Assembly (NCBI RefSeq): GCF_000150275.1
Contig: NW_002060943.1
Span: 4,856,008 to 4,920,007 of the forward strand
Direction of reading: 5' to 3'
Source of the DNA: Trichoplax adhaerens
Taxonomy: Eukaryota > Animalia > Placozoa
DNA: 64,000 nt
Part shown: positions 5,948-58,700 of the stretch, one piece after another
How positions within the stretch are numbered: the stretch's first letter is position 1
Layout of the letters: every line of letters begins with the position of its first letter
Made by a program: the position numbers and the translations under genes
The notes under the pieces: generated by a model
What the model saw: only the letters and a program-made list of their open reading frames with translations
Told to the model about the DNA's origin: nothing
The model's database searches: none

Positions 5948-5997
5948 AGCGGTTGTTTTGCTTCTTCCAATCGATTGCGCAGTGGCTTGTACACGAA

Positions 5998-12149: not shown

Positions 12150-13810
12150 TCGATATGGTTCAGTACAGTACGTAGGAGTGTAGTCAAGGACCACTGCAGA
12201 CGGTACAGGTAAAGTACGTATAGAAACCTTGTAAATAGACAAGTCTTCCAAGTGTGTCAATATGAGTGTCTCCAAGGCGTCACAGATATGCAGAAAACCT
12301 ACAGTACATGTACTGTACTGTGCAATAAGTAAACATTGTGCAATGTCGGTAGAGGTCTTCACGGTCTACAGTACAGTAGTCTGTTTTTAGTACTGAACAA
12401 TATACTTTAGTACAGTATACCGGTACAGTACCGTAGAGGTAAAAGAAATACTGTACAGTACTGTACTGTAGATCATGATTGTAGCAGTGTACTGTACTGT
12501 ACAGAACTGTACTGCGTGTGCGCGTACTGTAGACAGGCTCCGAGAAATTTTGGAGATTTATCGCACGTACGAGTCATACGACTGATACGACGCTGAACAT
12601 CATATTATAATCATTGATCTGTTTCTTTTCGAATTTGCTTTCAACATATCATCAATACACGTATTAAGTTGGACAAATTTGATCTGATTGGACTCGGTAA
12701 AATTGAATTATATCCGTTTTACAACGGTTATTATGTACTGTACTGTACAATGTACCTATATGCGTATACGCGTACAGTACTCGTATATGTTATACGTACA
12801 GTACTGTACAGTACAATGGACAATTGGACATACGCAGTGGATATATACTGTATATAACATATATGTATATATATATATACAGTATATAATTATATGCATA
12901 TATGACATATATATGTAAACGTACAGTATATGAGTATATTTAGCCAAATGTAACATATTGCATAACAAAATATATGCAGTTTCTTTTACTGCAACAATGC
13001 TGAAATGATCTCTAAAAATGGAATGAGCTGTTACTGCTGCACACTTCTGCATTACAAAACATCCGAGGAACGTCAAACTGACACTCGGTCACTCACAATC
13101 AAAGTGCAATTTTAGTCGCTGCTTTTATCCAGTGCAATACCGCACAGTATCACAATAAAAGTGAGCTTTAGGAGGTCGAAAACTTAACTCTTGACTTCAA
13201 TCATGAGTTGATGTTGTACTGTATATGATGCAAGTGTACTCTCTTATTTTTTTTTTATACTGTGTGCGTGCCAATCACACGAGAGAACGTAAGAGTCTTT
13301 CAGTACAGAAGTGAATTACATTTCCGCATTTTCATCAACCTTACACTCCCTACAGTTATTACCATTACTACAGTAAAGGTCAGTGGTCACTAGTTAGTAC
13401 AGTACTATACTGTACAGTACAGTACAGTACAGTACAGTACAGTACTTCCTTCATCACACTTCGGGCTTTGTACTGTACTGTACTGTCTCTATGAGCCAAA
13501 CCATAGAAACCGCGGCTTTGTTTTTCGATTCTACAGTACCGTGATACTGTACAGTGTACAGTGGACAGTATGGTAAAACGTGGTACTGTGCACTGTACAG
13601 TACTGTACCGTATGAAAGCGTACTGTACGCTTTCATAGTTTCTGGCTTTATCACGTGTGCAAATTGTTACGATGCACGGTAGTTTCTATACAAACGCAGG
13701 GTCAGATGCACGAACGTGAATTCTAGAAAGTAGTAAACTATTGTAAATCAAGCAACAAAATCTTTTCTTGTAGGCACCTAGTACAGTACCGTTCACTGTA
13801 CTAGAGTACA
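12150..13810. repeat. CAGTA/TACTG-rich low-complexity zone upstream of CoREST, with a (CAGTA)n run at ~13413-13445 and a (TA)n-rich patch at ~12840-12920
   Basis: Dense tacagtac/ctgtactgt motifs in both orientations, directly visible. Confidence 0.85.
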
Positions 13811-31284: not shown

Positions 31285-34200
31285 TTATAGTGGTGACAAT
31301 TCCTTAAATATAGTACTAAATGTCGGAAGAGAAGGTAGCCGTTTCGAACTTGCTGTGCTATAATCTTTGGATAACTTTTTATTCGTTCTCTGACTTCTAG
31401 TCATGCTAGTACTACCCGAGAATGTATACAAGTATGGATTAATGGATGAATTGAGGGGCAATACAAAGACAGCAATGAAAGGCAATGTATAGATTTGAAC
31501 TTCCGAATCGAGCATACTGCGCACCATAACAATATAGAAGGGCATCCAACAAGCTAAATTCGCTAATAATATTATTAACATCCTGCCAGCAATTCGTTTA
31601 TCATCTTCTCGAATATTACGACAATTTTCAACGGCCATTCTAGTACGCTGGATAGAGATAAACATTGCTAAGTATAATATACTAACAATTATCCATATTA
31701 AGACAGTGATAGCGATGGACGTTAAGATCCAAATACGAAAGAATGAATTATGAATATTCATAGGTAGGCAAACACTACTATATTGGTAGATACGATCATC
31801 AGCTGATTTACCAAAGCCAAACATTAGCGGGAAAGCTACATAAGATATGCTAACTAGCCAGAAGAAAGTAACAATTGCGCTTGCCGACTTAATAGTTAAT
31901 CGTTTACCAGATAATGGGTAAACCACGCAAATATAGCGATCTATGGTGATCACAAACATCATTAAGACCGACATAATACTGGATACGCAGGTAAGAAAAC
32001 ATGCAAAGACACAAAATGGATGCCGTAACCAGAATTCAGAATATTGTGCGTAGTTATGGTGATAGATTTGATCGGCAACAGCAATAATGATAAGGTAAAA
32101 GCCAGTCAACAAATCGGTGAAGGCTAAGTTGCTAATAAGAAATGTCGGCACTAAGTGACGATGAAATTTACGACGCCATATCCAATGCATAATTATGACC
32201 GACGTATTGCCAATAAGAGCTAAAATACCTACAATCCAAACAAAGATTTGTAACGATCTATGGGCTAATAAATTCTCACAAGTTGATAATTGCTCCTGAT
32301 TGGGTATAGGTTTGCATCTTTCCACAGTACCAGGTACAAGACAACATAAGTATTCGCGAGTAGATTGCCTAAAAGGAAGGGTCGAAATTTATTTGAAAAA
32401 GTTAATACACTCAACATTGTGGATAACCTTTAAAATTGCACCTATATGATGTAATAAATTCAGGGAAATTATGGATATCGTATCTAAGTGAAGCCCTGTT
32501 TGAGTAAATGTAGTTAAATATCAAAAGGTATCTGTTGTAGATAAATTTATTATATAAGTGAATGCGTGGTAATTTCTAATGAAATTAACTGCAATAGCAA
32601 ATTAATGTACTAAATTTTCTATAATAAAGAATGTTTGTGATAAATTTGAAGTAGGGATTTTAAATTGATTCCAAAAGATGAACAGCTAAAGCTGAAATTA
32701 TAATTTCCATACGGTTATTGATTTCGTAAAATCTTTAAAATAAGAATACAGACAGTACTATAAATAGAATTATCCATATACGCGTATTTAGCTATCATAG
32801 TAACATTTTTACAGTTCTAGAATAAGAATTAAAAAATAAAGTATCTAAGGTGTCAGTTTTACGCGATGCAATTGATTTCACTAATTTACAATAGGATAAT
32901 TACGTACAAATTCTGTAGCCTAATTAATCCATAAAATGGCTCCGAAGCTAGATCAACCAAAGGATTATTTTTTAATGACCTAGATATGAGATCCGGTGTT
33001 GTTAAATTTAGCAATTTATCTCATCAGCAAAACAAAATTTTTATCATCTAGACAAAGGAATTTGTAATTATGAATTATTGCGAACAATGTGAAGTCAATT
33101 AATGCTGCTAAACTTACAGTATTCTTAGTAAAGACATAGATGAAAAACAATTATGAGTAATAACCCGTACGTTATTTTCATCTAAGGTCCTAAAGCCCAA
33201 CAGAAATCATGGTATTAACATTCGAGAATAAATCGAATATATATTTTAAATTCTTAAAAGACATAATAACGCTAATCTATTTGTCTTACAAATTTTCAAG
33301 ATACTGATAACCATTAAAGAAGGAACCACAAACATTAGATATCCTATTATGAGCCAGATTCCTATAACGGGTAGGTACCCAAAAGTAAATAAATCAATCT
33401 ATTCATTAACAATGAATTAATAGTATTAATTTACATTGTAACCTCGACTAGTTTCCTATTAATAAGATTTTAGCCTTAAATTCAATGGTTACTCGTATAT
33501 CAAAATATTATAAACTAAGCATATGTCATTAGCTATGCAATCTACTAAAATCGAAAAACTTATTCCTCATTTTACTAATTCGATCAATTGAATAAACTTA
33601 CAAAATATGAATTCGATTAATATCTGATCGATTTTCATTATTAAAATACTCTATTTTATTTTTGGCTAGATGCCTAATGAAGAAAGTTTAATAATTAATT
33701 TAAAGCTTTATTTAAAATCATTTTTATTGCAAGATTTGCGTAGATATATGGAATAGTTTTAGCGTATACTTACAGTTCTCGCAATCGATAATGCCTCATC
33801 AAGTGATAGGTCTGAAATGATTGAAGATCGTTACCGTTTAGGATTCTATAATTAATAAAACATGGTAAAATAATATGGTAAGAAAACAGGAATCCAATCC
33901 ATATACAATTGCTCTATATTTTCAGCTTTAAATCTATGAAACAGAGGATGAATCACTTTGTTTGAGGAAGTCTTGTAAATTATCAGTTAAAAATATGAGT
34001 TTAATATCAGGTAATAAGAAAAGCAAATATCAATTGAAATAATAAATTTCAAAATTAAGAACTTATAAATTTCTTGGATTAAAATAAATACAGTTTCCAA
34101 GGGGCTTACAATGGTTACATGGCTTTTGAAATATGAATTTCTAATTTAAATTTACCGGTCAAAGATATTTTCTAGCTGCAATCTATGTGCCATTTAATTA

Positions 34201-37200: not shown

Positions 37201-40200
37201 TGATTAGTTATTGTTTTCTTTATAACTAGTTACATCTAGACCGACTGTAGTGCTATCAAATTACAATTATATCAAATAATATGTAACTATAATTTAATAC
37301 ATTAACGCAATCAAGCACGATTGCAATCTTTAGAGAAACAGCTTACAAAATTTTCAACTGCTTTAGGCCTTTAAATGTTCCAGTTTTTAACTCTCTAAGG
37401 GCATTATTACTTAAACGTCTGATATAAAAGGAAGAAAATTATATTAGCTTTAATTCATGGCTTATAAATATAATAATAATCTTCATTTTTAGTGTTAATA
37501 GGTGCTGCAAATGTAAAAGTTATAGGCATTTTAGGTTATAATAAATAATCCAGTCAGCAATTGCAACTAAAGTAAGATTGAACACTTTTGCTCGTGTTTG
37601 TTTATTTAAAAATTTTTTAGAATAGTATTAACTCTTTAAGATACAATATTTACAAAAAAATCATGCCTTTTAGAATTGATAAGCAATAATTAAACTCTAA
37701 CTTTAAGTTGCAATAAGTACGTCATTGAAATAAAGATTAACCATTGGACGATTTATAATAAAGGTTTTAGGGAAGTTTATAAAAGACTTAATTACTCTGA
37801 TCTTTCGAACTTGACAGCTGCTATGCGAATGGGAGCCGCTAAGTTATTCACTAAGGTTAACAGTATAGCTTACATTTCTGTCAAGTTATTTAAAGTGTAG
37901 AATTGGTCTATTTCCAACTTCCGTAATCCATTATTTTGGATAAATCTTGTGTGTTTAAAGTAAAGATGTTTATAATCAGTAATTTCTTATAAAGAAGATG
38001 TAACGGTCTTACGTACATCACAATTGAAAACAAATTCGAAATTTATAAAACCTATTCTTGAAGGCTACATACAGATTTTTTAAATGAATACAGCGATCAA
38101 AAGTTTTCGGTTTAATACGTTCAATGGCATTATCATTTAAATTTCTATTTGAAATAAAAGCAGAAGAATCAAATTTATCAACGGTTACACACTTAATTGA
38201 AGTAACTTGTGAGATATCTATTCTAAGCTTTCATTTTTAAGTTTTTATATTATTATTGAATGGATACTAACTTCTTTACTAGATCAATTTCGATTTATTA
38301 TTGTATAGCCAATATAACTAGTTACTTACAATTTCTCCAATCTTGAAAAGTTACAGATTTCTCCGTTAATAGATTTCAAGTTGTTCCGTGTGATAATCCT
38401 AATAAAGATTCAGTACCAATAGTGCTTCTTAACTCAAATCGTTAGTTGGAATTGTTAACTTATCATACCATTTTATAGCTTAAAATGGATTACAATTGTT
38501 TCACTTACAACTCTTTCAAAGATAATAAACCAGCAAATGCTTTATTGCTAATAATCCTCAATCGATTGCTACTTAAATCTCTACAATAATCAAAATGAGC
38601 TTATAACGTTACAATAGATCAAGTTGATGTAATTTTATCATGTTTCCTAGCAATCATCATTCCAGTAATTAAATTCTGCATTACAGTAGATGTTAAGGTA
38701 GTAACTTACAATTTCAGTAACGCTGATAAACCTAAAAAACTATTGTCCTGTATCTCACGCATCCTATTTCCTTCCAGGCTTCTGTGGGATAATTATCAGC
38801 TAATAAGCTATCATTTTATATACTTATGCATAATAGTTGTTGAACGCTAGTATGCAAGCAGAATCATATATTTCAATTCATTTCTCTTTTTGAAATCATG
38901 CGAAATGAAAATCATGGTATTTGAATTCAATTTAGAATATAAGTGTGAAAGTTCATTTTAGACATCGTAAAATGGTAATATATGGTATATTTCTCTAGAC
39001 CGATTATATAGTTATATATGGAGGGGCAGCATGCTTCTATTGCGACGGTAAATCATTGGCTTAGGAACAGTAAGCAAATAAATCCTGTGCGCATTCGGTT
39101 CCGTTAGGTAAAACTGAGGGCTCTAACAAGTAACATTCTGATAACAGAACTGTACAAATTTGCCACTGCTAATATTTCCCTACTAAATTAGTTTTCAGGA
39201 AGGAGTTTTTTGCATACTTACGGTATAGATGTACAATAAAATTAATATGTTTATCCAATGATATAATGTATCAAAAAGAAATTAATTTATGATCAAATAT
39301 GATAGTAAGATTTACCCCAAATTATTCGTGAATTTAATACCAAGAAAAGGCTACAATATTAGACTGTCATTTGCGAAAGAAAAGTAAAATCTCTACCTGA
39401 CATACGTCTTCTTAACAATCTAAGATATTAAATTTTTACTTTTATATATATAAGTTTAGGATAACTGCACGGCACGAAGTTGTCACGGTACGAACTACCG
39501 TGAAGAAATAGCTATCTAAATTTGGTTAATATAGTATAGTGATATTATATTACAACTAGTTACTTACAATAGGAGTTACTCTAATTATAAATGTGTTACA
39601 GTAAATTTATTGCTGTGCTGTAATATGTGCTGAAATGATTCTGTGAATGGACATATTGTAGTCCGACTGTGAAAAACTAGTTAGTAGATGTTCTCACCCA
39701 AGTGTTATTATAAGATGACTTGTGAATGTTAGCTGCTGTAGAAGGGTATATAAACCCGTCAGATAGTTGAATAAAGCAGTTCTCAATTGTATAGTTGTTT
39801 TAACGTAGAATCAAAGGCGTCTAAATTCTTGTAAGTAGGGATACTGAATCCCGGAGACTATAGTAATTTAGAGATTTGTTTTACGTTATACTTGTCACGA
39901 AGTTGGTTTGTGACAGAAGTATGCAATAGTAAATGGCTATCTTGACTTCGTTTTTAAACTGAAATAAACTCCGTAAATATAAATGCTTTAAAGGACAAAA
40001 AAAGACACAAGTGGAAATAGTTTTAGGACACTAGGATTATTTTCTTATTACAGATAAAACATTTAGACTTTAAAATGAAATACTAAAGAATAACTATCTA
40101 TAAATGTAGAGCAAATACTCATAAGCTGGATTGCCCAAAGTTGCTTCAATAAAAATTAATTTAATAAATCTATCTCAATAAATTATTGCTGATGAAATGA

Positions 40201-43200
40201 CTGGCACTGCTTCTAATATTGAAAGATTTTGACTTGGTCGGTTGATATTTCGCTCAGCATTTAAAAATTATCAACTGTTACTGATCCATCTCAAGTTAGA
40301 AATGACGCTATAAACCATCTGCGATAGAAGATACAGGTAAAAAATTTAAGGTATTTGCAATAGCTGGATAAGTTTCAACTTACAGTTCCGTTAAATTTTG
40401 TAAGAAGCTACAATCACTTGTTGGCAATCTATGTATTCGATTGTTTGAGAGCGATCTTATTTAGGATAAAGAGAAATTTTAGAAAGTGTTTGTGTAGACT
40501 AGTATAATTTTAGAGAAACTAAGAAAGCTTTTAGTCAATAAAGGTACTTACAAGGTTGTCAATGTAGGTAGTTTAGTAAAACATTTTACATTAAAATCTT
40601 GAATCTGATTATTGGAAAGCCGTCTAAATAGTTTTCCAGAAAATGTTTCTTATTATTTTGCTACAAATATTCATATTCGATTAAAATGTTAAGAATTGCA
40701 AATTTAGATAATGTCTATTCTTGCATATTAAAGCTATTACAGTAGGAAACAGCTAAAATTTTGTTATCCGACGCTATCATATTAACCCTGTAATATATAT
40801 CAGCACTGTAAGAATCATTTATTTCGTAATATTTGGCTGTATATTCCAAATTTGGTTAAAAATAGCCAGAAAATAGATTTTAATCTTCATCTTGTTGCGT
40901 GTTAGATAGTAATACATTTAGTAAGAGGGAGCTGACTTTACATCATTTTACTAGCATATATAATATGCATTTTAAATTGATCAGGTGCAAATTTGAGAAT
41001 CTAATGCACATGCCTATTAAGCTGTAATTTATCTAATCTGATGAAGCACCGTCTCCTATATTTTTCTAAGCTAACCATTGTTTTAAATGTAGATAAGATC
41101 GAATAATTACTATCTTATAGCCAACTACCAAATTGAATCAGAGTCTAAAATACGGTTAATTTGATGATATTTGAATATGGTGTTCGTACCATTGTGACTG
41201 ATTATTATCGTATAAATCAGTATTATTAATGTTTATCTTCACATATAGTGCCAATTCGTAATTAGTATATCATTGTAATGGTTACTGTATAACTTCAAAA
41301 TCATATGATTAACTGAATCGGGTAGTAAAAAATCCGATAGCTAAGTAATGATAGAATGTTGTATGTTATGGTTCATGTATTTTATGTTCAGCTCCAAACC
41401 AACAATTCAAGTACTTTCATAAGAAACTTTTCATAATCTTACAAACGCCGACGAATCGAACAGATTCTATAATTATGTCTACATCTTATCACTAGAATAT
41501 AGCGAGGTTTAATCAGCAAAGAAATTATATTTTTAGTAATCTTACAAAGTCGACAAACTGTGTAAGCCCTCAAAAAAAGTATCTTTTAAGGTAGTCAATT
41601 TATTCCTGGATAGATCCCTAATGGTAAGTAAAAATTAGACTTAATGTCAATACGTAACAAATCCAGGGTAAATTAAAAATCTAAAAGATAGCCAAGCTGT
41701 TTCAAATATTAAAGTCAAATTATTCTTCTATCCATGTGTCACAAACTTATGTTGCGAACTACTACACTAAACTAATAGATTACTTATGCCTTGCTCCTCT
41801 ACACCTGGAGATCTACTGTAGGTAGTTCTTTACTACTTTCGGTCACACAGGGATAAGTCTGTTCTAAAAGATTAGTATAGTTTTTATTAGTAGAGTAGCC
41901 GAGTACCTTCTCGTACACGATCTAATAAGGAACTCAGTAGCGGGTGCTAACGTATCGCCATTATTAATATCTATTGTATATAGGCTCTACTAATTAATTG
42001 CAAATACAATTATGCCTTTTGTCGTCTAGCAATCTAGACATTAATATTCTTAATTTCAATTATGCTTACCAGTATGATCCATTAGCTAAATACTGACAAA
42101 ATCTATTTAATTAGCAAGTACGGTGCTTTGCTCCGTAACACCATGCTACTACAGTTCACAATATATCTCGAACTAAAACGAAGGCAATTACATTCGACTA
42201 TTTTAAGCTGCCGACATTTTTCTATCGTTGCCGATGAATTAGCAACGTTATTAGATAATATCGATTAAATATTCTGTAGTTAAAGCCATTAATTGGCATT
42301 AAATTTCAGTAGATTGGATAGAAAATTAGAATATTTGTATTTAAAAGCATTTAGCATACAATCATAAATTTGTAAAAAATATTCAACAACCGCTAAGTTT
42401 GTAGTCTTACAATGTCGTTAGTTTTGGCAAATAATAGAATTGCTCCTGCTGCAATGTGCTCAATTGATTGGATGATAATATCCTTGATAATGACCGAAAA
42501 TGGATCTTGTTAACTGAGCTAAAAGTTGAATTTTAAAACAATTAATAGATCAAATTTCAATCTTACAATGAATGAAGACTATCTAAACCAAAAAAGGCAT
42601 TCTTATCCATGTAATTGATCCGATTGGAGAATAATTCCCTAAATGGATATGAAACCTTGTTATTCATTCGCGTTGTAGCCATATTGTACTCGTATGATGC
42701 AAATTAAGGTATTTCAATTATTGGGTAAAACAGGTTCGTTATCAGTATACAACGTTAGAGTTAATCTAAATTCTCAGTGTTTCATATCTTGTTTGCTATC
42801 TCGATATTACTCCAGTCTAAGATATCTGTTCGACATTAGTTTTTTGCACAAACGGGTAGGATAACTATATGATCATCATACGGTATACATGCAAACCACT
42901 AGAGATTGGCTACGGTGTTACATTCGTTGGGACAACAATTATAAAAATGTAAATACTAATATATCTTTTACTAAGAATGAATGGAAAAAATATCGGCAGA
43001 ACATTTTCTTTTATACTTACAATCTTTCAAGTGAGGATAATTCTTTAAATATATGTCCTTCTAGTTTTTCAATATAATTGTGAGGCAAGAAACTAAGAAA
43101 TAAATGCAATAATTAAATAAGCTCTTTTCGAGATCAATGTAATTTGTTTTCTTCACATAGGTAGCAAAAAACGAAAACCTTAATCACAACGGATCGTAAT

Positions 43201-46200
43201 TACTCTACTGTAATTGTCGTTGTGATGAAAAGATCAAACTATAGACAACCACATTTAATATTTATAGAAATTAATGATGATCAGATATTTCGATAATGAA
43301 AGATTTATAGTAAATCATCATTAAAGACAATAGCTTAAAAATGATTCCAGAACAATTTGGCTAGATGATCAAGTTCCAAAGTAATAGCTCTATTTGCAAT
43401 ATAAGAATTGCCTGTATTTCAGATTTGCAAGTCTGGGATAATGGAGTACTTTACAGGTGTTTTCGAACTGAATTCAATCAGTGAATAAGTAAACTAAGTA
43501 AATGATATTTTCCAGCCTAAGCTGAGTGTAACTTATCCTTCGATATTTTGTTCAATAACAGTTGCATGTACATTCGAAGTCAGCACTGTACTGTATATAA
43601 AGCTTGGTCTAAGCGATAATATTGTCGTCAGGCATATAAAAACTAAATTTCAGATCGAAGAAATTATCCTTAACTTGATTTATTTTTTAATTAAAGTAGT
43701 GTAACGTTGCAACCAATTATTGCATTGCACATTAAATTGTTTGTTTTTTTAAGAAATAATTATCGATGAGATTATCGACACTATTATTCAAATAAAATTT
43801 TAACTGAATACCAACTTATTTTGATTACGTGTACTTACAGCGTATTTAGTTGAGATAATCCTGTAAATGTCTCGTTTTTAATTTCCGTTAGATAGTTGTT
43901 GCTAAGAATTCTTATTAAAGAAGACATTTCTTACGAAAGTAATAGAATAAATTAAATAACATAGTCCTTAATAGCTGTCATCTAGGATCTTACAAAATTG
44001 ATAGTTTAGTCATATTGGCAAAATTGAATTTTTCTAGTTCTTTGATTTCGTTTGTGGTTAGTTCTCTGTTATAGCAAAGAATTGTATACTTTAACTAATG
44101 TTTATAGATAATGTAGAACACATCTATCTAAAAGCTTGGTACCACTACTGAATCTCGCTTATGGACTAAAGAGTATATAAACTTACAATGTTCTGATAGC
44201 TCCTGCTTGCCCTTTTAAAGCCATCAGGCTAGTTAAATTATTTAAAGAAACCTTTCTAGAAAGTTTAATGCCATATATATATGAATTTTATGCGCAGTTA
44301 GTAAAGTATAAGCTAAAACTGACATCACACATCGATATAAATTAGCTATTTTTACAAATTCAGTAAGCCTGACAAGCCATTTAAAAATCCTTCGCCAATT
44401 TCTCCAATTCGATTAGCATCTAAATGCCTTTGAAATTGATCAATTGGAACAAATAGTAACTATTTAATTAAATAATGTACCCATGTAAGGTAGTGTTATT
44501 AATTTTTTTCCATATTTCTCAAACTAACAGAAAATTCAATTGATGAAGATCTTCAAATAAATTGTCTGGTAAATATTGAATCTGGTTGTCTTGTAAATCT
44601 CTGTAACAGAATTTCGGATCAGAATGATGCTAATTATGGTGGCAAAAAATAATCAATCTATATTGTTTCTTGGAATGCTACTTGTATTGATTAAAATCTC
44701 GATTAATGAATAGCTATTGCAACTGTGCTCATTAAAGTCTATATTGTAGTATTTAGAGTTTTTTACAATATTACTAAATTTGTTCATGAAACTTTTCTCA
44801 ACAGATTATAGGACAAGGATCCGGTTATTATTTTTCAATAATTTGCTATTTCATATACGTCATGGTACGAATCACCGTAAAGAGTAAATGATTAAATTTA
44901 GTGGTAAACATTTATATATGGAGAAAACTAATAATGACTTACAGTAAGAACTACGATAGTTATTATTTTATTACAGTAAATTATACTGTACTGTAGTAAG
45001 AGTTCTTATACGGTAACTAATGTTAATTGATTATAATGTTATGCCATGTAACGTTTGTGATGAATATCCTGAAGATATTCAGTTACAGATGATACTATAA
45101 ATAATTCTGAGTATGGACATACTGTAATCTAATTATCTAGAATCGTTCAGTACATGTCTAAAATTATGAATAATTTCTGTACTAATTTAGCTATACAATA
45201 TGAACTAAATTTCAAGAACTACTGTTATGACTGATACATGATAGCTGCTGCTGAAGAGTATTTAAGCTCGGCAAATAGTTGAATAAAGAAGAGTTCTATA
45301 GTTGTTTAACGTAGAAGCAAAGGCGTCTAAATTCTTGTGAGATAGTTAAGGGATACTGAATTCCCAAGACTATAGTGATTTAGAGATTTGCTATACGTTA
45401 TCTTTGTCACGAAGCTGGTTTGTGACTGTATATTATCAAATGTTAAATTTGATATTTTGGCTTCAATAATGTATTCTTTGAATTGATACAGCTTTCAGAC
45501 ATGAGGAGTTTAAAAGATCAAAATATGAATAAATTGTTAAAGTTATGGACCCTGTGAAATGTGGAAATAAAATTTCTAATATAATTCTAGTACATGTGTA
45601 TTCTAAAGGAGTTTAGGTTATGCCGCTAATTAATCAATAACTATTTTCTATCAACGATCTGATTAACAATAATTTTTAAAATACATATGAGAATCTGAAT
45701 ATTTTATCAATCCGTAAAAGGTCTTGACTTAGTCCTATAAATCCTGCAGCGCTATCGCATTAATCAAAGTTCTAAATATATTTTAGTAAACGATTTTAAA
45801 TACGCTATTACTATCTTACAATGTTAAAAGCGACGATAATCCCTTGAAGTGTAGAGGTTCGACAGACTTTAAACGATTACTTAGCAAGAACCTAAGAAGC
45901 ATTGAAGTGAAGAATGACGCGGTCAATTAAGTGCATTACTATTTTTGTAAATAATGCGCTATTAATTCTTGGCAAGAACCTTCTGATAGTTAGAAGTAGG
46001 CATCATTAATGTAAGCTAATGCTATTCAAAATGAATCTAAGCAGTGCAGTAAATTAAAAAGTAGGTATGAATGCTAGAAAAAGCTATGAAACTTCCAGAT
46101 GAAATGCTAAGGATTCTTGGTAAGAATATAATTTATATGGTAAAATAAATAGCCTGTATGACTGATCAATAGGCCGGCTAAAACATCAAATGAAGTTTTA

Positions 46201-48632
46201 ATTAAATACATTTAGGTAAGCAACTATCCCAGACTATGAAGTAAGCAATACATAAACATGTACGTATATCAAATAAAAGCAATATCCTATAGTAAAATAT
46301 AGATATAACTGATTGAAATTGATACAATAACGTTACATAGAATGATAAAATTGCTTCAAACACGAATCGGTTGGCAATTTCATTATTGGAGTGTTACAGT
46401 GTTATTACTGTATTACAGTAGAAATATCAATGTTAGGATAATTCTGTTAGACTATCCTTATTTAGTTAACTTCTAATTTGGATATACTGTGTTTTAATAT
46501 AGCACTGACTTTTTTGACAGTGACACTTATACACATACTGAAATTAATAGTTATAGTAGGAAATGCAAATCATCTACTTACAGTTCGAATCATTGTAATT
46601 GTAATTTACTTATGGTAGACTGTAAATTATCATGGAAATGTTCCGTGATAGGACATATCGTAATCTGACTATTCTGTATTAGTCATTATATGTCTATGTT
46701 CGTAAATACTGTTGTCTGCATTAAGGGAGCAGTAGCTAAAATTAATATCTAATTCAGTAAATGATTCCAATGTTAATTGTATTAACTATGACTCATGAAC
46801 TATTGAGGAATAGTATATAAATGCAGTATATCGTGAAATAAAGTGAATTCTTAAACTTAGTGTTTAACGTAAAATACGAGGCGTTTAAGTCTTTGTATAG
46901 ACTGCTAGTAGAGCAAAAGTGTTTGTGATAGTGCAGATATCGTTCCTTGATACGTGGTTCAAGGAATTGACTTATTGATCGTACATTACGTTATCTTGTT
47001 GCAAAGCTGTTTTGTGGCATGGAGTAAGAAGTAATGCCTCAACTACATTATGTGCATATTTCGAAATATCAATTATAATAGGCTATATCTTCATCTTAGC
47101 TTCATAACTAAAGGAGCAGAACTGAATTTTGAAAAAGCTAATTAGTTTTTAAAAACTTACAAGAAATGTAGCTGGGTTAAATTAGCGAATTGATAATCAG
47201 CTAATTTAGAAATTCTGTTATATCCTAAATGTCTATAAAAATTGTAAAATTTTAAAGATCAGTTTTCGTCAATAAGTTATTTAATAGAAAAGATAAAAAA
47301 AATTCGTTTATTATTGCCATACATGTAGAAAAATTTACTATAATTAATTCAAGAACTTACAACAAATTCAGCTGTTTAAGATATCTAAATAAGCTAGGAT
47401 CCAGTTCTTCAATCGTATTTCTTTCTAGTGATCTATTTATATTAATAATATTAATGCAGATATATCATTACTTTTTATGCTACTATTAGTTTCTCTTCTT
47501 ATCGGTACATAAATGATGATTTACAATGTTGAGAGTTGAGTCAAATTGTTAAAGGAATCTGGAGCTATACGCTGAATTTTGTTGGAGCCAGCATCGCTGT
47601 AATATAGGGTAAGATAGTAAAAGTTAAAATTAACCATTTCATTAATTTAAACTATAATGATAGAATAAGATTAATCAAGCGGTTGAACACTTGGATATGA
47701 AAAGTGCTTAATGAAACACGAGGAATCATGTCCAAGCGACTACAAAAGTCCAATGGCAGTTGCCATGAAAATATTATTTTAGAAACATAAGTGTATACGA
47801 AAATGCTTTGCTGATACAGTAGAAGTATTGGCTTACAAAGTCCTCAGTCCAAAGAATGCTTTCAAATTTTCCGGCTTTAGTTCTTTGATCAAATTATCTT
47901 TTAACAAACTAGTGTGTAATTCAACAGAAATAATTAAATTAATATGATGCCTTGTTACTTCCCGATGATTATTCTTTAGAAAATAGAATTAAAGTATCCA
48001 AATATATCATAAGGTCATGAAAGTGTACATAATCTTGCTATGAATTTGATTCAATAATTCTAGGACACACAGAATCAATACAATATTGCTATCACTCTTG
48101 ATATCCTTTTCTGTATTAATGTACGGACATTGAATATTATTTTGCTAAGTTATCCCTTCAAAACTGACTGAAACTCTTTTCGTTATGAAGGTTACCCTAA
48201 TCGCCTACGTGTATTATAGATGATATACAAAGCGAATCCCACATGCAAGATATACAGCTGTATTTTAAGTAGATACGTGAATGGCTGGCAGATATTTTTT
48301 ATATGCATTTGTGACGATATATATCATGCAAGATTTTGTAACAAAATCGAACGACAAGGAGAAAATATGCTTATAGCGTAAACTATTATCGTTATCATTC
48401 TACAAAGCGCCAACGGTAAATTTAAAATGTTAAATTTAACAACTTACTAAATTTTCCAAATTGATAAATCGACTTTTGGTACGTTGATTAGTTCATGTAA
48501 TGAACAATCTATTTTTTCCGAATCACATTTACATACAGCCGGGCAAGTGATATTAACTGTGGATGAAGCAAAAATAGTTGTTACGAGTATATTAAAACCT
48601 ATCAAATTAATCTGATATTCCTTACCGCACAT
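31285..48632 (-). CDS. Very large leucine-rich-repeat GPCR (LGR; type C/GRL101-RXFP-like hinge and 7TM): signal+LRRNT exon, ~37 LRR exons, one hinge+7TM exon; roughly 1300 aa
   Basis: Terminal exon 32368-31285: YLCCLVP..RCKP..LSTCENLL hinge, 7TM with NLAFTDL, TIDRY, CWMP, NSSINPYLY. About 37 phase-2 exons of 69-84 nt (mostly 72) from 47908 to 32908, each xLxxNxIxxL..F..LxxLxxL. Exon 48632-48448: MCGKEYQINLIGFNILVTTIFASS..CPAVCKCDSEKIDCS. Start codon is tentative. The subset of exons I translated had no stops. Confidence 0.88.
36875..37097. repeat. Diverged two-copy tandem duplication (~111 bp unit) in a GPCR intron, abutting an LRR splice donor
   Basis: ctagataagcaatcttaaggaaactatattacagcagctacgctaaagctactccgtaaaaactagttctactagaagctac vs ctagataagtaatgttaaggaacctattttacagcagctatgctcaagctactctataaaaattagttctacttgaagctac. 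Confidence 0.85.
39481..39915 (+). mobile_element. Solo-LTR-like element, family A (435 bp), intronic
   Basis: TGTCAC...GTGACA ends; perfect 5-bp TSD GAAGT; TATATAAA (~39748) followed by AATAAA (~39770). 3' third is homologous to the family B copies. Confidence 0.85.
41737..42140 (-). mobile_element. Solo-LTR-like element, family E (404 bp), intronic
   Basis: Minus strand reads TGTTACGG...TTTGTGACA; perfect TSD CCATG; AATAAA on the minus strand at ~41883. Confidence 0.78.
44858..45427 (+). mobile_element. Solo-LTR-like element, family B (570 bp), intronic, with eroded termini
   Basis: Same length as, and nearly identical to, 55138-55707. Ends cGTCAt...GTGACt; TSD ATATA/GTATA (1 mismatch). 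Confidence 0.85.
46392..47019 (+). mobile_element. Solo-LTR-like element, family C (628 bp), intronic
   Basis: TGTTACA...TGTGGCA ends; perfect TSD TGGAG; TATATAAA (~46814) then AATAAA (~46837). Second copy at 54437-55066. Confidence 0.85.
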
Positions 48633-51600
48633 TTCAATATAGTTGTATATTGAACATCTGCGAACGACTGGATCAGTATTTATAAACAATGGCGACGAAA
48701 AGCAACAATTTACTTCTTTACAAATTTTTTTCTCTGGATAACCTATCAAATAATTTATTGCAGGACAATTTTCAAAATAAATCAATTATTATGACAACTC
48801 TGACCGATCTAGTTGCTTACTCAATAACAATCTAGTCTATTTAAAGTTATGGAACAGCTAAAAATATTTGTTACCCAGATCTTGAGACTCATTTACCCGT
48901 CGGTATTGCAACCATTTATAAGCTGGTTCATTGATAAAGAAAATAGGAAAATTAATTACTAGACATCTTAGCTGGAATAAATTATGATTATATATTTTTT
49001 ACTAATGAACAAAATCTATTAATACGTAAAATTGATTTATTACAACTTTTTATATATACCGCAATATTTTTCGTCTGAGCCATCATGACAATCATTCTTG
49101 TAATCGCACCAGTCTGTATAAGAAATACAAGCACCATCATCACACTCTAACAGCGCCTTAGGTATATCAGGTGCACCTGAAAGGAAATTAAAAAAGCTTA
49201 CAAATCAATTTCATCATCATTTAATCGGAATATATGATTACAATGATATTCGTGATCAGAATAAATTACAACTTGATGATAAACGTAAAACAATACTAAT
49301 TATATTAACATAGTTATATAGGCTTATTTCAAATGAGATAATTCACTAATTGATAGCTCAAATAGATTATATAATAAAATAAACAACAAAAATTTCATGA
49401 AGTATGGTATATAATGTGTAAGGTATAAAGTTTAAACCCAGATTAATAGTGACTTGTACGTGTCTATCTAAAAAGTCTTCAATATCTTACAATGGTTAAA
49501 TTTATTTCATATATTGAATGCATTACAGCCAAAATATCCTAAAAGATTTAGATATCAAAATAGTCAAATTATGACGTATCTAATTATGAAATCTTTAATA
49601 TCTTAAAATAATTTACTTTTTCATTTATTACAATCATTGGAGCTAAAGTATATTGCAAAGTTTACTTTTAAAAATAGTCAATTCTATGACACCCATACCA
49701 GTAGTATCGTCTGTCTACTTTCTGATTGATCAAGGATACTCGCTTACGCGGGCACTTATTTCGAAATAATAAATTCACGTCTTAATAGCTTCATAATAAA
49801 ATAGTCGAATCCATATAACAGATATATAGTATATAATGATACAAGTTTATTCATTTTTCGTTTACTTTATGGTTTAATGTAGTCATTTAATCTTAATATT
49901 TGGTTTATTAAATGTTCAGGATTTGATTTCATACTTCGCTTGTACCAGATATTTTGCCTCACTAAAAATTATTTCAGTTGAAAATGATGAAAAAATACGG
50001 GCTTAACTATTGGAAAAGAGCCTTAGCTTTGAAAACCTATCAATAGTTTTATTATTTTATCGTTCAGACTTTGTTATAGTTGCACTGTCAAATGTACGTA
50101 TGGACCGAAATTTTAAATACTGGGGTTAAGTAAGGCATTATGTGCTAGCATTAATCATATTAAGTATCATAATCATGCTTTTGTCATATCAATATTTAGA
50201 CATGTTACAGTAGCTAAAGAGATAGATATTGGGCGTACCGGTACGAGATTACCACTAAGAATACAAGTATACTGCAGAACTGGACTTTCTTTTAAGGTAT
50301 TACCCTAACTACATGGAATTTAATATCTGAAAAACAAATCTATAACGTACATAGACAAACAATAAAACGACGATCTTATTGAATATCTAATGCACTAAAA
50401 TTGCAGACGGCTATTATTAATATCTAAATATATAGATTAGGCTCTTATGCAATTACATTTTCTTGTAACCTCTTAACGAATTATCGGTAGTCGATTATAT
50501 TATGTGCGGGATTAAGCTAGTGACTACATACTGTAAATACTGACTGTGCAATAAATATTCTACCACTGCTATGACTAAATTAAAATTTGTTTAAGGTGCT
50601 CTAGATGACATTATGACGTAATATTGAAACAATATGCATAAATTGAATCTCTCAATAGGATAAGCAACGTAAGCAATGCAAAAATTTCTGTATACTTTTA
50701 GATCATAATGTTCGCATATAGTTAGCGATTTGAATATATAATGACATCTCTGCTAATAAAATCATTAGCCGCAGCCAATAATGCTAAATTCTGTCTAATC
50801 TATTGCAGAATGCCATCGATGTATGTAATGAAATCTAAGTATATGATAAATGCATCGTCATCAAATTGCGGTATTAGACTGAGCAGATTTGCGTACTATA
50901 ATACAAGGTAGAGTAAAAGTGAGACGAATAGCCTAAAAGATATTTATAAGCTTGTATCTCTTAACAAACTAATATAACCTTAAACCGTTTTCTGTCTATC
51001 TCATTAAGTAGATGACAACTTTAAGTGATATACTAAACTATAGATCGAACTATGCGAACAGCAACTTCTATAGTAAAATATAATTTATAAAATACGTATA
51101 CGTATAAAATGTGGCAGTAATTAAAAAGATATTCCGGTTATTTCTTTATGAAACACTACGAAAAGTTGTTTTAGATTTAAGTTAGGGAGACAAATTGTGA
51201 TCAGTGTAGGAATACTTTTAATTCATTCCAAATCTGTAATATAAATATTGGAAGGAATAACTTCAAGATCATAATCGGTAGCATAAAATTACGACTTTGT
51301 TCGAAATTTTTGACTACGCATAGCAGTCAGTAAATTCAAAATTAACTAATAGTAATTTGAGATAATTAAAAATATTTCGATTGCTTTTATTCTACTTAAG
51401 GATCCGGTAATCGTTGACTTTTTTCTATTTACGGAGCTAATGAATATTTCCTAGATACGTACATGCTTAGAAAGGTAGAAATAATTTTTACTATCTTCGA
51501 TATATTATATATCATTAATAGCTCTTGGCAATATTTTAGATTACGTACAGCTATGAAATTGAAAATGCAATAACATAAATTAGAAATAATTAAACGACTA

Positions 51601-53286
51601 TTGTGTCTTATTACTTTCAGGTGATGGGATGAAGTGTAAACGGTACTTCCTGTTTATTAATAAACACTTTCATTATACGCGGATATGAAAAATATTTAGG
51701 AATAATAGCAGACATTATCTCAGGTATTAGTTGAATGATAAAACACTGGGAGCAATATTCTAAATCATGCTAGTAGCAATGCTTTCAAGACAACAAATGG
51801 AAATTAGAAATAATTTAGACATTATCTCAACCCTTTTCATCAATTATAGATTAAGGAGCATAAAAATCCAAGCACAGAAATTACATAAAGTATTTCCTAA
51901 ATGGGTATCCATTTTCAGTACTATAAATAGCAGTAATTTCAAATTACATCATGTGCGACGTAATGCTTTGATAAATAAAAGTGGAGTTTTAAATTGTACA
52001 TATGGGTAATATTTTCTGAATAAAACAAAATAAATTATCAATAACTTTCAAGCTCTCCAACGTTACTATTGCGTGTATGGTTTGATAAACATTTCTATGA
52101 TACCAGTGTATTTAAAAATAAAATGGAACGGTCCCAAGACTATCTGCTGTTTAGTATAATTTTATAAAAGGTTTTTGAAAGGATGCTTTGATCAGATAGA
52201 CAGAAAATATTTCCATCACAAAATAAAAAGAGATTAAGCATAATTTTCAAATTAACTTAGTCATTGACATTTATCGCAGCCGATTTATTGGCATGATATA
52301 AGCTACGGTACCAAATATACAATAGTAAGTACCAGCAAGATATGCGTGAATGGAAAAAAGTTAAGGTATTATATTTGGCTCTGCATCGAATTCTGAAATT
52401 AAAGGCACTTTTTTATAACAGCATCTACAAATATATCGCGCCTGAGAACGAGGAAATTAATACAATCTAGTGATTTTCCCTGCTTTTATTTTAAAAGGGT
52501 TTTGGGTCATATTTGATGTTATCCTATAGATTTGCATAATTCAATCGTTGAAAAAACTATGGGTGTCATTGAAAGAGTATATTATTATTCGTCTACGGAA
52601 TTTAAATAGATTCTGAGCGAGTGATATATCCGTTGTAAATTTGTATTATATTATGAGTAGGCATTCTATAATATAATAGATTGTGTTGGCTGAGCACGGT
52701 ACAGTCTAATTATTACTTTATATCATAAATTTTCGATAGTAAAAGGATTTTATGAATAAGGATAGGATTTTAATAAGGCCGATTGTCTTTTATAGTACAG
52801 GAAGTCAGTATCCAACTATGCTATAAATATACTAAAAATTAAAAATCTTTCGTGATATATCTTTTGAGTCGCCTAAGTATAGAAATTGAAAATATGTAAG
52901 AGCAGTTAGATCTGCTAAATCTATTTGTGTTAGAAATCTTTCTATCATTTAATCACCATCCTCCATGATTTAGCTATAGTTTCTGTTAGCAATTTGAGCT
53001 TCAATAGCACAAATTTTAGCTGAATGGCTAATTAAGAGATATGTATTTGATATAATTCAAGCACAACTAGTTCCTCGGAATACTTTACAATCATTAATTA
53101 GTACATTTAAGAACTATATTTTCAGGAACGGAAGCACCACTTCAACTACTAATGGATTAGAAAATGAGAGCCGTCTTTCGACATGCCTAATTACTACAAG
53201 CCATTTTAGATTTTCATAATTTGGTTAGCTATTTCTTTCTCTATCGATTGAAACCGTATAGTTAACTTAACACCGTTTTATAATCT

Positions 53287-53873
53287 TGTCACGGTACACC
53301 GTTACTAATTAAGTAACTATAAATTAATGAATGCTTATGAATAGATAAAATAAGGTTATGTGCTATGTTTTAATGCGCTTGTAGCTGATAATAGGATGGT
53401 AGAATGAGATAAAAATAGAAGTTGTTAGCAGTTAATTTACTGTAGGTTTATAAGGTATGTTAATCTCTAAAAATTGAGCTGTATATGGACGAAGGTTAAG
53501 CGTCTTAACACCTGATAGCTTGTAGCTATCTAAGTCTGAGGATATCGACATGTATATTTAGTAATGGTATTATACTAATTAATGTAACTTGCAAAGCATG
53601 AATTCTCACTCGTTAATATTGGAATTCACTGTAGAAACCTATTTAAGCGCGTGTGTTTGTAGAATAAAGTAGGTAATTGCTCAAGAAACGGCAAGACTCA
53701 TATCGTGAAGAATAGTGTAATAATTAGTCAGTTGTCTGTGGAGATCAGCCGAGAAATCGAGTTCTCAAATACTTCTCTCATAGAAACTGAAAGTACTGGG
53801 AGAAATAGCCCAAGTTTTAAGTAACTACACTAGAGTTCTTTACTTTCCTTTGCCACAAGTGAGGGTTGTGACA
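53287..53873 (+). mobile_element. Solo-LTR-like element, family D (587 bp)
   Basis: TGTCAC...GTGACA ends; perfect TSD AATCT; TATTTAA (~53640) then AATAAA (~53663). Confidence 0.83.
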
Positions 53874-54436
53874 AATCTAGACATAATCATCCTAGCATAT
53901 TGAATTCTATTAATAAATTATAGCTATGCCCAGAATACGTTCTGCTAATGGATGAAAATCCTGCAAATTTTAAAGAATACTAAGCGAAATTGAAAATAAA
54001 GAACTTTTTCACCATTAGTAAAAATATATTTTACGTTCATAAATTATATCGTCTTAAAGAGAATGAAATAATTTAATTTTAGATTAGAATAAAGCGTGAA
54101 AACAATATCAATCTAACTACTATAGTAATAAATAACTAACATAAAAGTTAAAATGCGTTCAAAGTTGATCCATCATCGGATTGAAATGTTGTAAGTTGAA
54201 AAGGTAACGACTGATAGAAGATCAAACAATTCGGCCACAGTACCGTAGTTGGACAGCTCAGTTTGATTATTATTCAGAACAGTGCCGTAAGAAGTTGCGG
54301 ACCGAAACTAAAATTGTCAAATATCACGAGCATTGTACTAGTGATAGAGTTGTTATGAAAATCGCCATACTTGCTACTAATACATAGCCACAAGGAGAAA
54401 CTAAAGGTTGATAGTTACTAAATTTAATTATGATAT

Positions 54437-55066
54437 TGTGACAGAGTTATATACTGTATTAGAGTAGAATTATCTATGTTTGGATAATTCTGTTAGACTA
54501 TCCTTATTTAGTTAACTTCTAATTTGGATATACTGTGTTTTAATATAGCACTGACTTTTTATCACAGTGACACTTATACACATACTGAAATTAATAGTTA
54601 TAATAAGGAATGCAAATCATCTACTTACAGTTCGAATCATTGCGATTGTAACTTACTTATGGTAGATTGTAAGTTATCGAGGAAATGTTCCGTGATAGGA
54701 CATATCGTAATCTGACTATTCTGTATTAGTCATTACATGTCTATGTTCGTAAATACTGTTGTCTGCATTAAGGAAGCAATAGCTGTAATTAATATCTAAT
54801 TCAGTAAATGATTCCAAAGTTAATCGTACTAACTATGACTCATGAACTATTGAGGAATAGTATATAAATGCAGTATATCGTGTAATAAATAGAATTCTCA
54901 AACTTAGTGTTTAACGTAAAATACGAGTCGTTTAAGTTTTCGTGTAGTCTGCTAGTAGAGCAAAAGTGTTTGTGATAGTGCAGATATCGTTCCTTGATAC
55001 GTGGTTCAAGGAATTGACTTATTGATCGTACATTACGTTATCTTGTAGCAAAGCTGTTTTGTGACA
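54437..55066 (+). mobile_element. Solo-LTR-like element, family C (630 bp)
   Basis: TGTGACA...TGTGACA ends; perfect TSD GATAT; colinear with 46392-47019. Confidence 0.85.
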
Positions 55067-55137
55067 GATATAGAAATATCGCAATGAAATTAATTTTATG
55101 CTACGGACATGAATTGTTGTAGCTAGTCGTATGTCAA

Positions 55138-55707
55138 TGTCACGGTACGAACCGCCGTGAAGAGTAATTGATTAAATTTAGTGGTAAACATTTATATATG
55201 GAGAAAACTAATAATGACTTACAGTAAGAACTACGATAGTTATTATTTTATTACAGTAAATTATACTGTACTGTAGTAAGAGTTCTTATACGGTAACTAA
55301 TGTTAATTGATTATAATGTTATGCCATGTAACGTTTGTGATGAATATCCTGAAGATATTCAGTTACAGATGATACTATAAATAATTCTGAGTATGGACAT
55401 ACTGTAATCTAATTATCTAGAATCGTTCAGTACATGTCTAAGATTATGAATAATTTCTGTATTAATTTAGCTATACAATATGAACTAAATTTCAAGAACT
55501 GCTGTTATGACTGATACATGATAGCTGCTGCTGAAGAGTATTTAAGCTCGGCAAATAGTTGAATAAAGAAGAGTTCTATAGTTGTTTAACGTAGAAGCAA
55601 AGGCGTCTAAATTCTTGTGAGATAGTTAAGGGATACTGAATTCCCAAGACTATAGTGATTTAGAGATTTGCTATACGTTATCTTTGTCACGAAGCTGGTT
55701 TGTGACA
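55138..55707 (+). mobile_element. Solo-LTR-like element, family B (570 bp), intact termini
   Basis: TGTCAC...GTGACA ends; perfect TSD GTCAA; TATTTAA (~55539) then AATAAA (~55562). Confidence 0.88.
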
Positions 55708-58700
55708 GTCAAATAAAATTTGATAAAATTGGGCAATACTTAAAGTCCTTCAGCTACTGGGTATGTAATGGCAAATGTCATAAGAAAATATCGGAATCAT
55801 TCTATAAATCAACGCTTAACACCACGGTAGCTTGGGTGTTATCCATTAGGGAATATATCATAGGTTTCAATTTAATTAACATCTTGATAGCACACTATAA
55901 AGTTTCATTCTTAATTGGTTAAAGTATACCATGATCAATTTAGTTGACAACAAGAATTCTCTTAACATCATGCATACGATTAGGATATTCAATACATCAT
56001 TTTAGTTAGATTTAAATGCAGTAGTAACGAAGTGATACTTGGAAAATATAGTGATTTATTGAGCTAAAACCTCGTATTCTAGCTCTTCTAAAAGTTAAAA
56101 AATTCGAAGATATTGTGATTATCTTAGTTGAAGCTTTGATATTGCTGTAGCTATAAAGGTATTGGCTATAAATATCGTAATTAGAGTTGGTACTTAACAA
56201 GACAGCATCGACTTAAATTATCTATTCGGAAATATTGTAATCAAGTAGCAAAATCTTTGAAATCACCCTTGATTCATAAATTATCGATTAGAAATAGTCT
56301 GACTAATTGTTCCAAAGATTATAGTTAGATATCGTATCGCAATAATCTCTTAAAAGATATAAAGGTAATTTCAGTTAATTTTAATACTGTAGTCGACTTG
56401 AAGATATTGATTAAAAAAATCCATGACGATTTAGTTATCTCTTAGCATCCTTTTAACTTAGTAAGTAAAGTAGTAAACTATTTTGATCAAATTAAATAGA
56501 CTTCTATCCTTCCTTTAGCTTGATAATTTACCTTATCGATTAGAAAATCTTATGATTGATTTAGCTCCACATAGTAAATTGATAATAATCAATTACAAAT
56601 TATCATGATCATACATTGAAGACTTGGCATTCTATGATATAAAGATGGACTATATTGGATTAGGTTCGAAGAGAAAACAATTAAAATATTGATCACAAAC
56701 TTGTCATAAAGCTTTAATTTCTTACATGTCGTCAGACCTTGTTATCGGTACATTATCTCTTAGTATTTATGATTTATCGCTCTACAGATATTTGCTATTG
56801 TTTCAAGATGTTTAAAGGCGACATAAACTTAAACAACACTATAACTACTGATATGAAAACAATGATACCTTATACGTGAAAAGTTTTTATATGAAATGGC
56901 TTCATCTTAAATCATTTCAAACTAGAATCTAGTAGCAAAAATAATATATAACCAGTCGAAGAAAGAACTTCTTGCTAGATAATTATTATTTTTACTAGGA
57001 CCAGCATAATTTTAAAGTGACGGTATAAAGGAATGTCCGTATCAAATTTTCATCTGTTAAAATATCCATTACCAGAAGTTAGATTGCAAGAACTAGAATG
57101 ACACACCAACTTCGAGATATTACTACATCCTATTAATAATTGCTATAATACTGCAAATAGATTCCATCGTTTCACTTTAGATACATGCGTGATCAAATAA
57201 TAGCTGTCATGTTACGAATTGTCTAAAAATAAATAGAAAATTTTAATCAATCAAAATATCATTGCAAATCTGATCACTCCGCTTGAAAAAAAATCATGAA
57301 TACAAGACTAAGATTTTCCTAAATGAGTTAAGTTGGTGGAATGTAGAAACTAACAATATTAAAATTGAAGCATTCCTAAAGAATTAATTGTACCGTGCTG
57401 AACAAATTTATAAAACTGGTGATTATAAATCTGCTTGTTTTAAATCATAATCGGTGCGGGCTATCTCTAAAACTCATTTTCATTAGTAGTAATATGAACA
57501 TGAAGATCTACATCAATAGCGATGTAAGATGAAAAGAAGAATTCCCATATTGACCATAAGGAATTACGGCATAGGATCATTATAAGGATCAACAATTATA
57601 CTAAATTGAAAATGATAGAAAAAGAAAGTGTATTTCAAACCATACCACATAATATACAAGTGTAAATATGTTTTCTGAAGTCCAGATTGATATTATTTGA
57701 TAATAAGGCACAAAACTCCAATGAAAATAATAAAGACAGTAGTAAATTAAATATTAGATGGCGAAAGCTGTGAGGCCGAATGCAGAAAATCAAAGAAATA
57801 TCTAACCAGTAACTTGAGCCAAGTGCATGAGCAGGATATGGGTAAGTAAAATAGCTTTACAATAAGACTCTTTTTTCCCTATCATACTTCCAATAATACA
57901 AAACTTGCGCCAATCGATGAAACTACAATTTTTTTGTAGTTGATATTTCACCTTAATAAAGAATTAGAATAGAAAGTCAATTTAAATGTCCTGCATAAAG
58001 TACGTTCGTTACCTTCTATATTTATACTAATATTTCTATGAACCGGCTATTGTAATAACTGAGTCTACTGATACTACAAATAAGCTACTTTATAAAAATG
58101 AGAACAATAAGGACATCATCGGTGGAATATATAATAAATAGCTGGAAATAAACACGAGCCTATAAACTAGCATGCATTGGAATTATAAAATATCCTATTA
58201 TTCGCCAGCACTATTAATCTCAACAGCAACCGTAAATCAAATAGAAATTAATGATCAATTCATGATTAAAGTAAATTTAGATCATTAGATAGATGATGAA
58301 GTGAATCAAAGTCTCATTAACTAATATACCAGCTCCTAAAGATACGATGTAAAGTAATTGTGTAATGTCAAAATAAAGTACCAAAAGACGATTTTAGCAT
58401 AGAAAGTTGAAACAGGTCAAAATAAACCAAAATGAGTCATCGATTAATCGCCATAAATACCAAAAATTTGCATTGAAAATGATTAAAAAATTGAAATGGA
58501 GTAATTAAAATATAGCTCTTATCTTCCTACTACTCATTAGAATTTAGAGAGAGTTAAAAAATGATTCCGTTTGATGCTAACTTATTTCTTTTAATCTTAC
58601 CTATAGTATAAACTCTAATATCAAATCAAATGAGGATAATCGAATCGATCAGATGAAAGATAAAAAGTTATAAACTTATAAATTAAATTTTTCACGACTG

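Follow-up and report, generated by a model that had tools for sequence, protein, structure and literature searches.

What are the seven short repeats packed into 16 kb at a receptor locus of the placozoan Trichoplax adhaerens, and by what route did they arrive there? The question came from a reading of the letters of a 64,000-nucleotide stretch (contig C1414, positions 4856008-4920007; hereafter the window), and it was followed through the whole genome (105.6 Mb in 1414 contigs). The seven elements, numbered E1 to E7, are very probably solo long terminal repeats (LTRs) of Ty3/Gypsy retrotransposons of the Gmr1-like type, in which pol is arranged in the order protease (PR), integrase (IN), reverse transcriptase (RT) and RNase H (RH).

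The sequence-only reading had described seven elements with TGT...ACA-type ends, each between its own 5-bp target-site duplication (TSD). Element boundaries and TSDs were read from the window letters and then trimmed (Table 1), and all seven elements were recovered on re-reading. The TSD was perfect in six of the seven (chance 1/1024 each), E3 having one mismatch. The same six ended in TGT(C/T/G)AC...GT(G/A)ACA, the ends of E3 being point-mutated. The 6-7 bases common to both ends make up a short terminal inverted repeat, and each LTR end carries a small local palindrome. A TATA-like box stands 21-23 bp before AATAAA in six elements, within the 20-25 bp given earlier for the plus-strand copies; E2, the only minus-strand copy, has AATAAA without a TATA match. 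A block 3' of AATAAA is conserved among families that are otherwise about 50% identical. Direct repeats were absent from the inside of every window element. The earlier statement that gag/pol sequence is lacking was borne out between 36 and 60 kb of the window, where no open reading frame (ORF) of at least 70 aa had gag/pol character. When the window was compared by BLAST with 90 other genomic loci, the matches consisted of the seven E intervals and one extra repeat (63713-64000); there was no interspersed-element match in the first 39 kb, of which the first 30 kb had been described as free of such elements.

Table 1. Elements, receptor exons and further repeat of the window (positions in the window; TSD, target-site duplication)
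Feature	Position	Strand	Length (bp)	TSD	Remarks
E1 solo LTR	39481-39915	+	435	GAAGT	young family
E2 solo LTR	41737-42140	-	404	CCATG	short form of its family
E3 solo LTR	44858-45427	+	570	ATATA/GTATA (flanks)	terminal bases mutated to CGT...ACT
E4 solo LTR	46392-47019	+	628	TGGAG	
E5 solo LTR	53287-53873	+	587	AATCT	young family
E6 solo LTR	54437-55066	+	630	GATAT	
E7 solo LTR	55138-55707	+	570	GTCAA	
7tm_1 (rhodopsin-type seven-transmembrane, 7TM) exon	31288-32325	-			host receptor gene
LDLa exon	49043-49198	-			host receptor gene
Eighth interspersed repeat, start	63713-64000	-			runs past the window end; 93-95% identical to pieces in six other loci

Pairwise identities were 98.2% for E3/E7, 94.3% for E4/E6 and about 74% for E1 against E3/E7, and the estimate of about five families was therefore retained. 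The remaining pairs are 36-54% identical, yet have the end motifs, the TATA-AATAAA spacing and the block after AATAAA in common. E3/E7 and E4/E6 lie nested within 11 kb in the order A B ... B' A'. The two pairs (E3...E7, 10.28 kb apart, 98%; E4...E6, 8.05 kb apart, 94%) were considered as paired LTRs of nested full elements, a reading that was rejected: every copy is bounded by a matching TSD of its own, the outer flanks are unlike and no ORF or pol sequence lies between. The same nested order is what would speak for a local segmental duplication, or for chance resemblance, in place of insertions; the likelihood of this is negligible, given a separate TSD and unrelated flanks for each copy, hundreds of dispersed copies per family and a precise empty site (below). 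E3 and E7 are at most about 90% identical to all other genomic copies despite their likeness to each other; haplotig pairs of this family, as a comparison value, are 98.9% identical. Six of the ten E3-E7 differences fall within the first 31 bp (p about 6e-6 under an even spread). The pattern resembles the outcome of gene conversion between two separate insertions at a distance of 10 kb, the putative tract spanning positions 32-569.

Copies of all five families were found throughout the genome. Totals are uncurated first-look candidates, identities were taken from the 40 top-scoring copies per family, and elements were dated by pairwise identities only. The E7 family had 502 candidates (top 40 full length, 86-90% identical to E7 apart from E3), the E6 family 665 (top 40 full length, 94-95%), the E1 family 484, partly E7 cross-hits (top 40 95-100%, best 99.5-100%), and the E5 family 186 (top 40 all full length, 98-99%). 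The E2 family had 88, of 364-628 bp owing to a variable central segment; in most copies an additional segment of about 135-225 bp separates positions 204 and 205, and the arms are 97-99% identical. Very roughly, and if the first-look counts are roughly right, the five families total about 1 Mb, or about 1% of the genome.

TSDs at other genomic copies had been named as a check on insertion. In 50 sampled copies (E1 family 8, E6 family 12, E7 family 30) the 5-bp TSD was perfect in 35 and had one mismatch in 10 more. Perfect TSDs numbered 8/8, 10/12 and 17/30 in the three families, the score dropping with family age; the E7 sample also held 10 one-mismatch TSDs, and its flanks were unrelated. All 50 copies were scored as solo because their flanks are unrelated. 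Four of six other distinct loci inspected for the E2 family had perfect TSDs, and two further E5-family copies had ATGTG/ATGTG and TAGTG/TGGTG. Small contigs (1-8 kb) hold about half of the youngest copies of E1 and E5, compared with about 15-20% of copies in the old families E6 and E7; this excess fits many heterozygous insertions split off as haplotigs, as for contig C1115 (below). Solo LTRs were also seen nested, an E6-family LTR lying inside another at C1404:2040376-2041640 and at C1409:4657522-4659018, which splits the host copy near positions 140-143.

An empty site, likewise named earlier as a check on the insertion model, was found for a sister copy of E1. On the small contig C1115 there is an E1-family copy that matches E1 at 99.8% identity and has the TSD ACGCT. 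Its flanks map contiguously on C1413 (left 8404664-8405888, right 8405886-8407023) at 98-99% identity, so that the main scaffold represents the allele without the insertion, the target 5-mer being present once, at C1413:8405886-8405890 (as read from the alignment coordinates). The pair indicates an insertion polymorphism within the sequenced material. Together with the near-identical copies, it suggests that the sequenced clone underwent retrotransposition not long ago.

Searches of the whole genome gave few matches to retroelement enzymes, namely 13 to RT and 11 to integrase (rve). When LTRs of E1 to E7 were sought beside these matches, only contig C913 was positive, with the E4/E6 family. 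There an RT/RNase H remnant ends in ...ADTLSRLL*, and about 130 bp further on the polypurine tract (PPT) AAAGTGGGGGAGGGGGAAAAGGAG directly adjoins an E4/E6-family LTR (91% identical); the C913 pol stops directly after RNase H. The E4/E6 internal tail with its LTR junction occurs also in C1381 and C844 and nowhere else in the genome. For the E1 family the pattern GGGG(N0-12)TGTCACGGTAC was used, which had two matches in 105 Mb, both at E1-family LTRs (90-91% identical to E1; C1398 and C1413). Both are preceded by a common tail ending in GCGAGGGGA(A/G), a PPT. One of these tails comes after the end of a protease-like ORF, and a genome search placed the E1-family internal tail at those two loci only. 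The E1-family locus at 1381 kb of C1413 is the best candidate for a full E1 element. No PPT and interior junction was found for the E2, E5 and E3/E7 families.

The other end of such an element was seen in a sister family. Contig NOWV01000661.1 of Trichoplax sp. H2 begins with a partial 5' LTR ending in ...GTGGTTGTGACA, the same end motif as in the window families, followed by TA, a primer-binding site (PBS; TTGGTGGCAGCGGTGGGATTC), gag(CCHC)-PR, rve-RVT_1-RNase H and a PPT at the contig end. Its LTR is 99% identical to an LTR on C1162 that starts with TGTCACGGTACC, and this sister family has the same start and end motifs as the window LTRs. The window's own genome holds six junctions of LTR end and PBS (found with one exact PBS pattern), on other LTR families of about 580-600 bp. 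A tRNA gene matching the PBS was found neither in the window nor in the other sampled loci.

The order of domains on C1162 is gag, PR, Integrase_H2C2/rve, Integrase_p58_C and RVT_1, with IN upstream of RT, and C505 holds a 99.6%-identical fragment. The LTR of C1162 lies at 368-988 on the minus strand (620 bp); it is separated from pol by a gap of 2.5 kb and an AT-rich stretch of about 800 bp, and gag-pol on this contig matches the H2 interior at only 71-73% identity. This LTR and the coding sequence on C1162 probably come from different elements. IN upstream of RT is the trait that separates the Gmr1 clade from other Gypsy elements (PMC8220671). The Gmr1-like assignment was made because this order is found both in C1162 and in the H2 contig, gene order and best-match lists being the basis of this putative placement. 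Nearest proteins in the best-match lists were 45-50% identical with the same domain set and came from sponges, amphioxus, a crinoid, a sea urchin and fishes. Protein searches for more Trichoplax elements returned a single H2 protein, the rest being at most 50% identical and from other animals; the gag-PR search led back to NOWV01000661.1.

A full element would thus consist of an LTR, a tRNA primer-binding site, gag(CCHC)-PR, IN-RT-RNase H, a G-rich polypurine tract and a second LTR, and would be reverse-transcribed. Its integrase would recognise the TGT...ACA ends and make a 5-bp staggered cut at the target, giving the 5-bp duplication. Recombination between the two identical LTRs would then delete the interior and leave a single LTR flanked by both duplications, which is the route to the solo state that we infer. 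Because AATAAA follows the TATA box by about 22 bp, the start site in the 5' LTR is expected to fall on the poly(A) signal or immediately beyond it. Only the 3' LTR would then make use of that signal, and R would be very short.

Several points weigh against this account. Promoter and poly(A) signals of the LTRs are predicted to be in use from motifs only. The seven LTR-PBS junctions (six in the genome and one in H2, by the one exact pattern) include none on LTRs of E1 to E7, and in none of the five window families was a complete two-LTR element seen on a single contig. The youngest copies, among them the 99.5-100% identical E1 copies and the polymorphic one, are all solo, and the only E1 internal tail lies in two old loci (90-91% identity). 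Young insertions are usually full length, and the E1 family shows the opposite.

The sequence-only reading had left the choice between solo LTRs and short elements moved as a unit, for example by a Ginger-like integrase. In the latter case the LTR-like units of 400-630 bp would move by themselves, inserted whole by a Ginger-type DDE transposase or by a retrotransposon integrase that takes LTR-only DNA as its substrate, and would never have been full elements at these sites. Consistent with this are the uniformly solo state of the sampled copies, the finding of an interior at just 2-3 loci per tested family (E4/E6 and E1) against hundreds of LTR candidates, and the lack of a same-orientation LTR pair within 10 kb among the top 40 matches of any family, E1 and E5 included. 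Kamm et al. 2018 (PMC6057997) also masked 936 'Ginger' pieces in the genome. Members of the same LTR families, however, occupy the 3' LTR position behind a PPT and pol or protease sequence; terminal inverted repeats measure just 6-7 bp; and the conserved promoter and poly(A) layout with the block after AATAAA suits a transcribed LTR, not a cut-and-paste element. The solo state could be accounted for if LTR-LTR recombination is fast in this mainly clonal animal. No Ginger-like transposase was present among the 7 of 11 rve matches examined, although a diverged one could escape. Movement as whole units is accordingly considered improbable. A narrower form of it, in which young families of the E1 and E5 type spread as LTR-only non-autonomous units by means of a retrotransposon or other integrase, would explain the all-solo young and polymorphic E1 copies and the confinement of the E1 interior to old copies of 90% identity; it too was given little chance of being correct. 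Solo LTRs of Gypsy elements were preferred between the two, the E4/E6- and E1-family LTRs adjoining a PPT after an interior with RT/RNase H or protease, and the sister LTR adjoining a PBS and complete gag-pol.

The examined rve matches were of Gypsy type on C890 and C1162, bacterial IS3-like twice on C1329, rve with Chromo and DUF5679 on C681 and C1366, and the neighbour of a BTB gene on C1389. C681 and C1366 have intact ORFs of 370-382 aa with DUF5679, rve and a chromodomain; their integrase is unlike the Gypsy ones and comes possibly from a Maverick/Polinton-type element. C1329:9911-16940 holds an IS3-type integrase (HTH_21 and rve) and an IS256/Mutator-family transposase in intact ORFs, and since bacterial insertion sequences are present this contig is probably symbiont or contaminant DNA in the assembly.

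The scarcity of interiors could also be a product of the assembly, if identical LTRs of full elements had been collapsed and their interiors lost or left on small unplaced contigs. Intact-looking gag/pol does occur on tiny contigs (C1162, with its 2.5 kb gap, C505, C613 and C890), many young E1 and E5 copies lie on small contigs, and in one E5 copy the LTR is interrupted by a scaffold gap. Set against these are the seven window copies and the fully sampled copies, which are gap-free with unique flanks on both sides, and the old families, whose copies are too diverged (86-95% identity) to collapse and are solo to the same degree. In an overlap assembly of long (Sanger-type) reads, moreover, any read passing from a flank across the 435-630 bp LTR to internal sequence would contradict a solo path. 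Collapse as the general explanation is therefore very unlikely, though some young full-length elements on small contigs could be concealed in this way.

Three known systems were compared. The Ty3/Gypsy (Metaviridae) elements of the Gmr1-like clade (Gmr1 of Atlantic cod and relatives from marine animals) are alike in the TG...CA ends, the 5-bp TSD, TATA and AATAAA within the LTR, a PBS complementary to a tRNA 3' end (in sister families of the window LTRs), the G-rich PPT and a Gypsy-type RT, RNase H and H2C2-rve IN with IN before RT. They differ in that the ratio of solo to internal sequence is extreme in Trichoplax (hundreds of candidates against 2-3 loci per tested family) and in that each Trichoplax LTR end carries its own small palindrome. 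Ginger1 and Ginger2 are integrase-derived, cut-and-paste DNA transposons that resemble the window elements in their TGT...ACA-type termini and short TSDs; Bao et al. reportedly described Ginger in 2010 by these two features and by descent from a Gypsy integrase. The window elements differ in lacking long terminal inverted repeats (6-7 bases against tens) and in being directional, U3-R-U5-like and linked to PPT and pol or protease sequence, and through sister families to PBS and gag-pol. TRIM, SMART and LARD elements are likewise small, non-coding and abundant with a 5-bp TSD, but have two terminal direct repeats around a PBS-PPT core, whereas the window elements are single units without internal terminal repeats.

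Trichoplax is a textbook case of an animal genome poor in transposable elements (TEs). In a tblastx survey, Wang et al. 2010 (PMC2871265) reported 139 TE fragments and put LTR elements at 0.04% of the genome, with neither active TEs nor solo LTRs. A clade that they called 'Tag' on the basis of RT fragments may include the present elements. The RepeatModeler library of Kamm et al. 2018 (PMC6057997) masks 6.7% of the genome (Unknown 3.78%, 'Ginger' 0.29% from the 936 pieces noted above, LTR 0.16%), and TEs were judged not to be currently shaping these genomes. Kim et al. 2025 (PMC12221973) annotated TEs with EDTA and discussed Mutator elements alone. The literature search found no paper describing placozoan solo LTRs. 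The earlier claim of an overlooked mobilome is thus fair, if qualified: the families go unlabelled in the published surveys (LTR 0.04-0.16%), but the sequences of E1 to E7 are probably already in de novo libraries, unclassified or misclassified, because Kamm et al. 2018 list 3.8% Unknown and 0.29% 'Ginger'. The element type is ordinary and already known; its abundance, solo state and recent activity appear unreported. The scale and recency of the LTR activity are modest news. By uncurated first-look counts, five families from one 16-kb stretch may by themselves add roughly 1 Mb, equal to about 1% of the genome, and they would account for part of the 'Unknown' repeat class. The high ratio of solo to full elements is a usable gauge of the speed at which retroelements are purged from a compact, mostly clonal genome.

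The host of the cluster is a large receptor gene on the minus strand. From the positions of its 7tm_1 and LDLa exons (Table 1), E1 to E4 are intronic; E5 to E7 are placed 5' of the LDLa exon. Relative to the gene, six of the seven run antisense, which with n=7 is not significant; such a bias would be expected if poly(A) signals in sense orientation were selected against. The cluster appears to be tolerated in the large introns and 5' region of the gene, mostly in antisense. Gene annotation has to reckon with the TATA and AATAAA signals that the LTRs place within these introns. Eleven further LTR pieces were found in 124 kb around 46 unrelated LTR loci, so LTRs cluster generally; seven in 16 kb is an extreme cluster even so. 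A search with the 7TM exon for the orthologous receptor of H2 gave only an 85%-identical 301-aa model on contigs of less than 3 kb.

Elsewhere in the window, 5660-6260 and 12470-13450 hold microsatellite runs of the (ACAGT)n type and tandem units of 90-100 bp, a motif type that is unusually abundant in Trichoplax (Wang et al. 2010, PMC2871265). A lookalike of an LTR start (1 mismatch) at 13536-13546 on the minus strand was discarded as lying inside (ACAGT)n-type repeat sequence, with no element there. The repeat that begins at 63713 lies about 1 kb downstream of weak RT remnants in two of its six other loci (C1397 and C1399) and is probably part of a further retroelement family.

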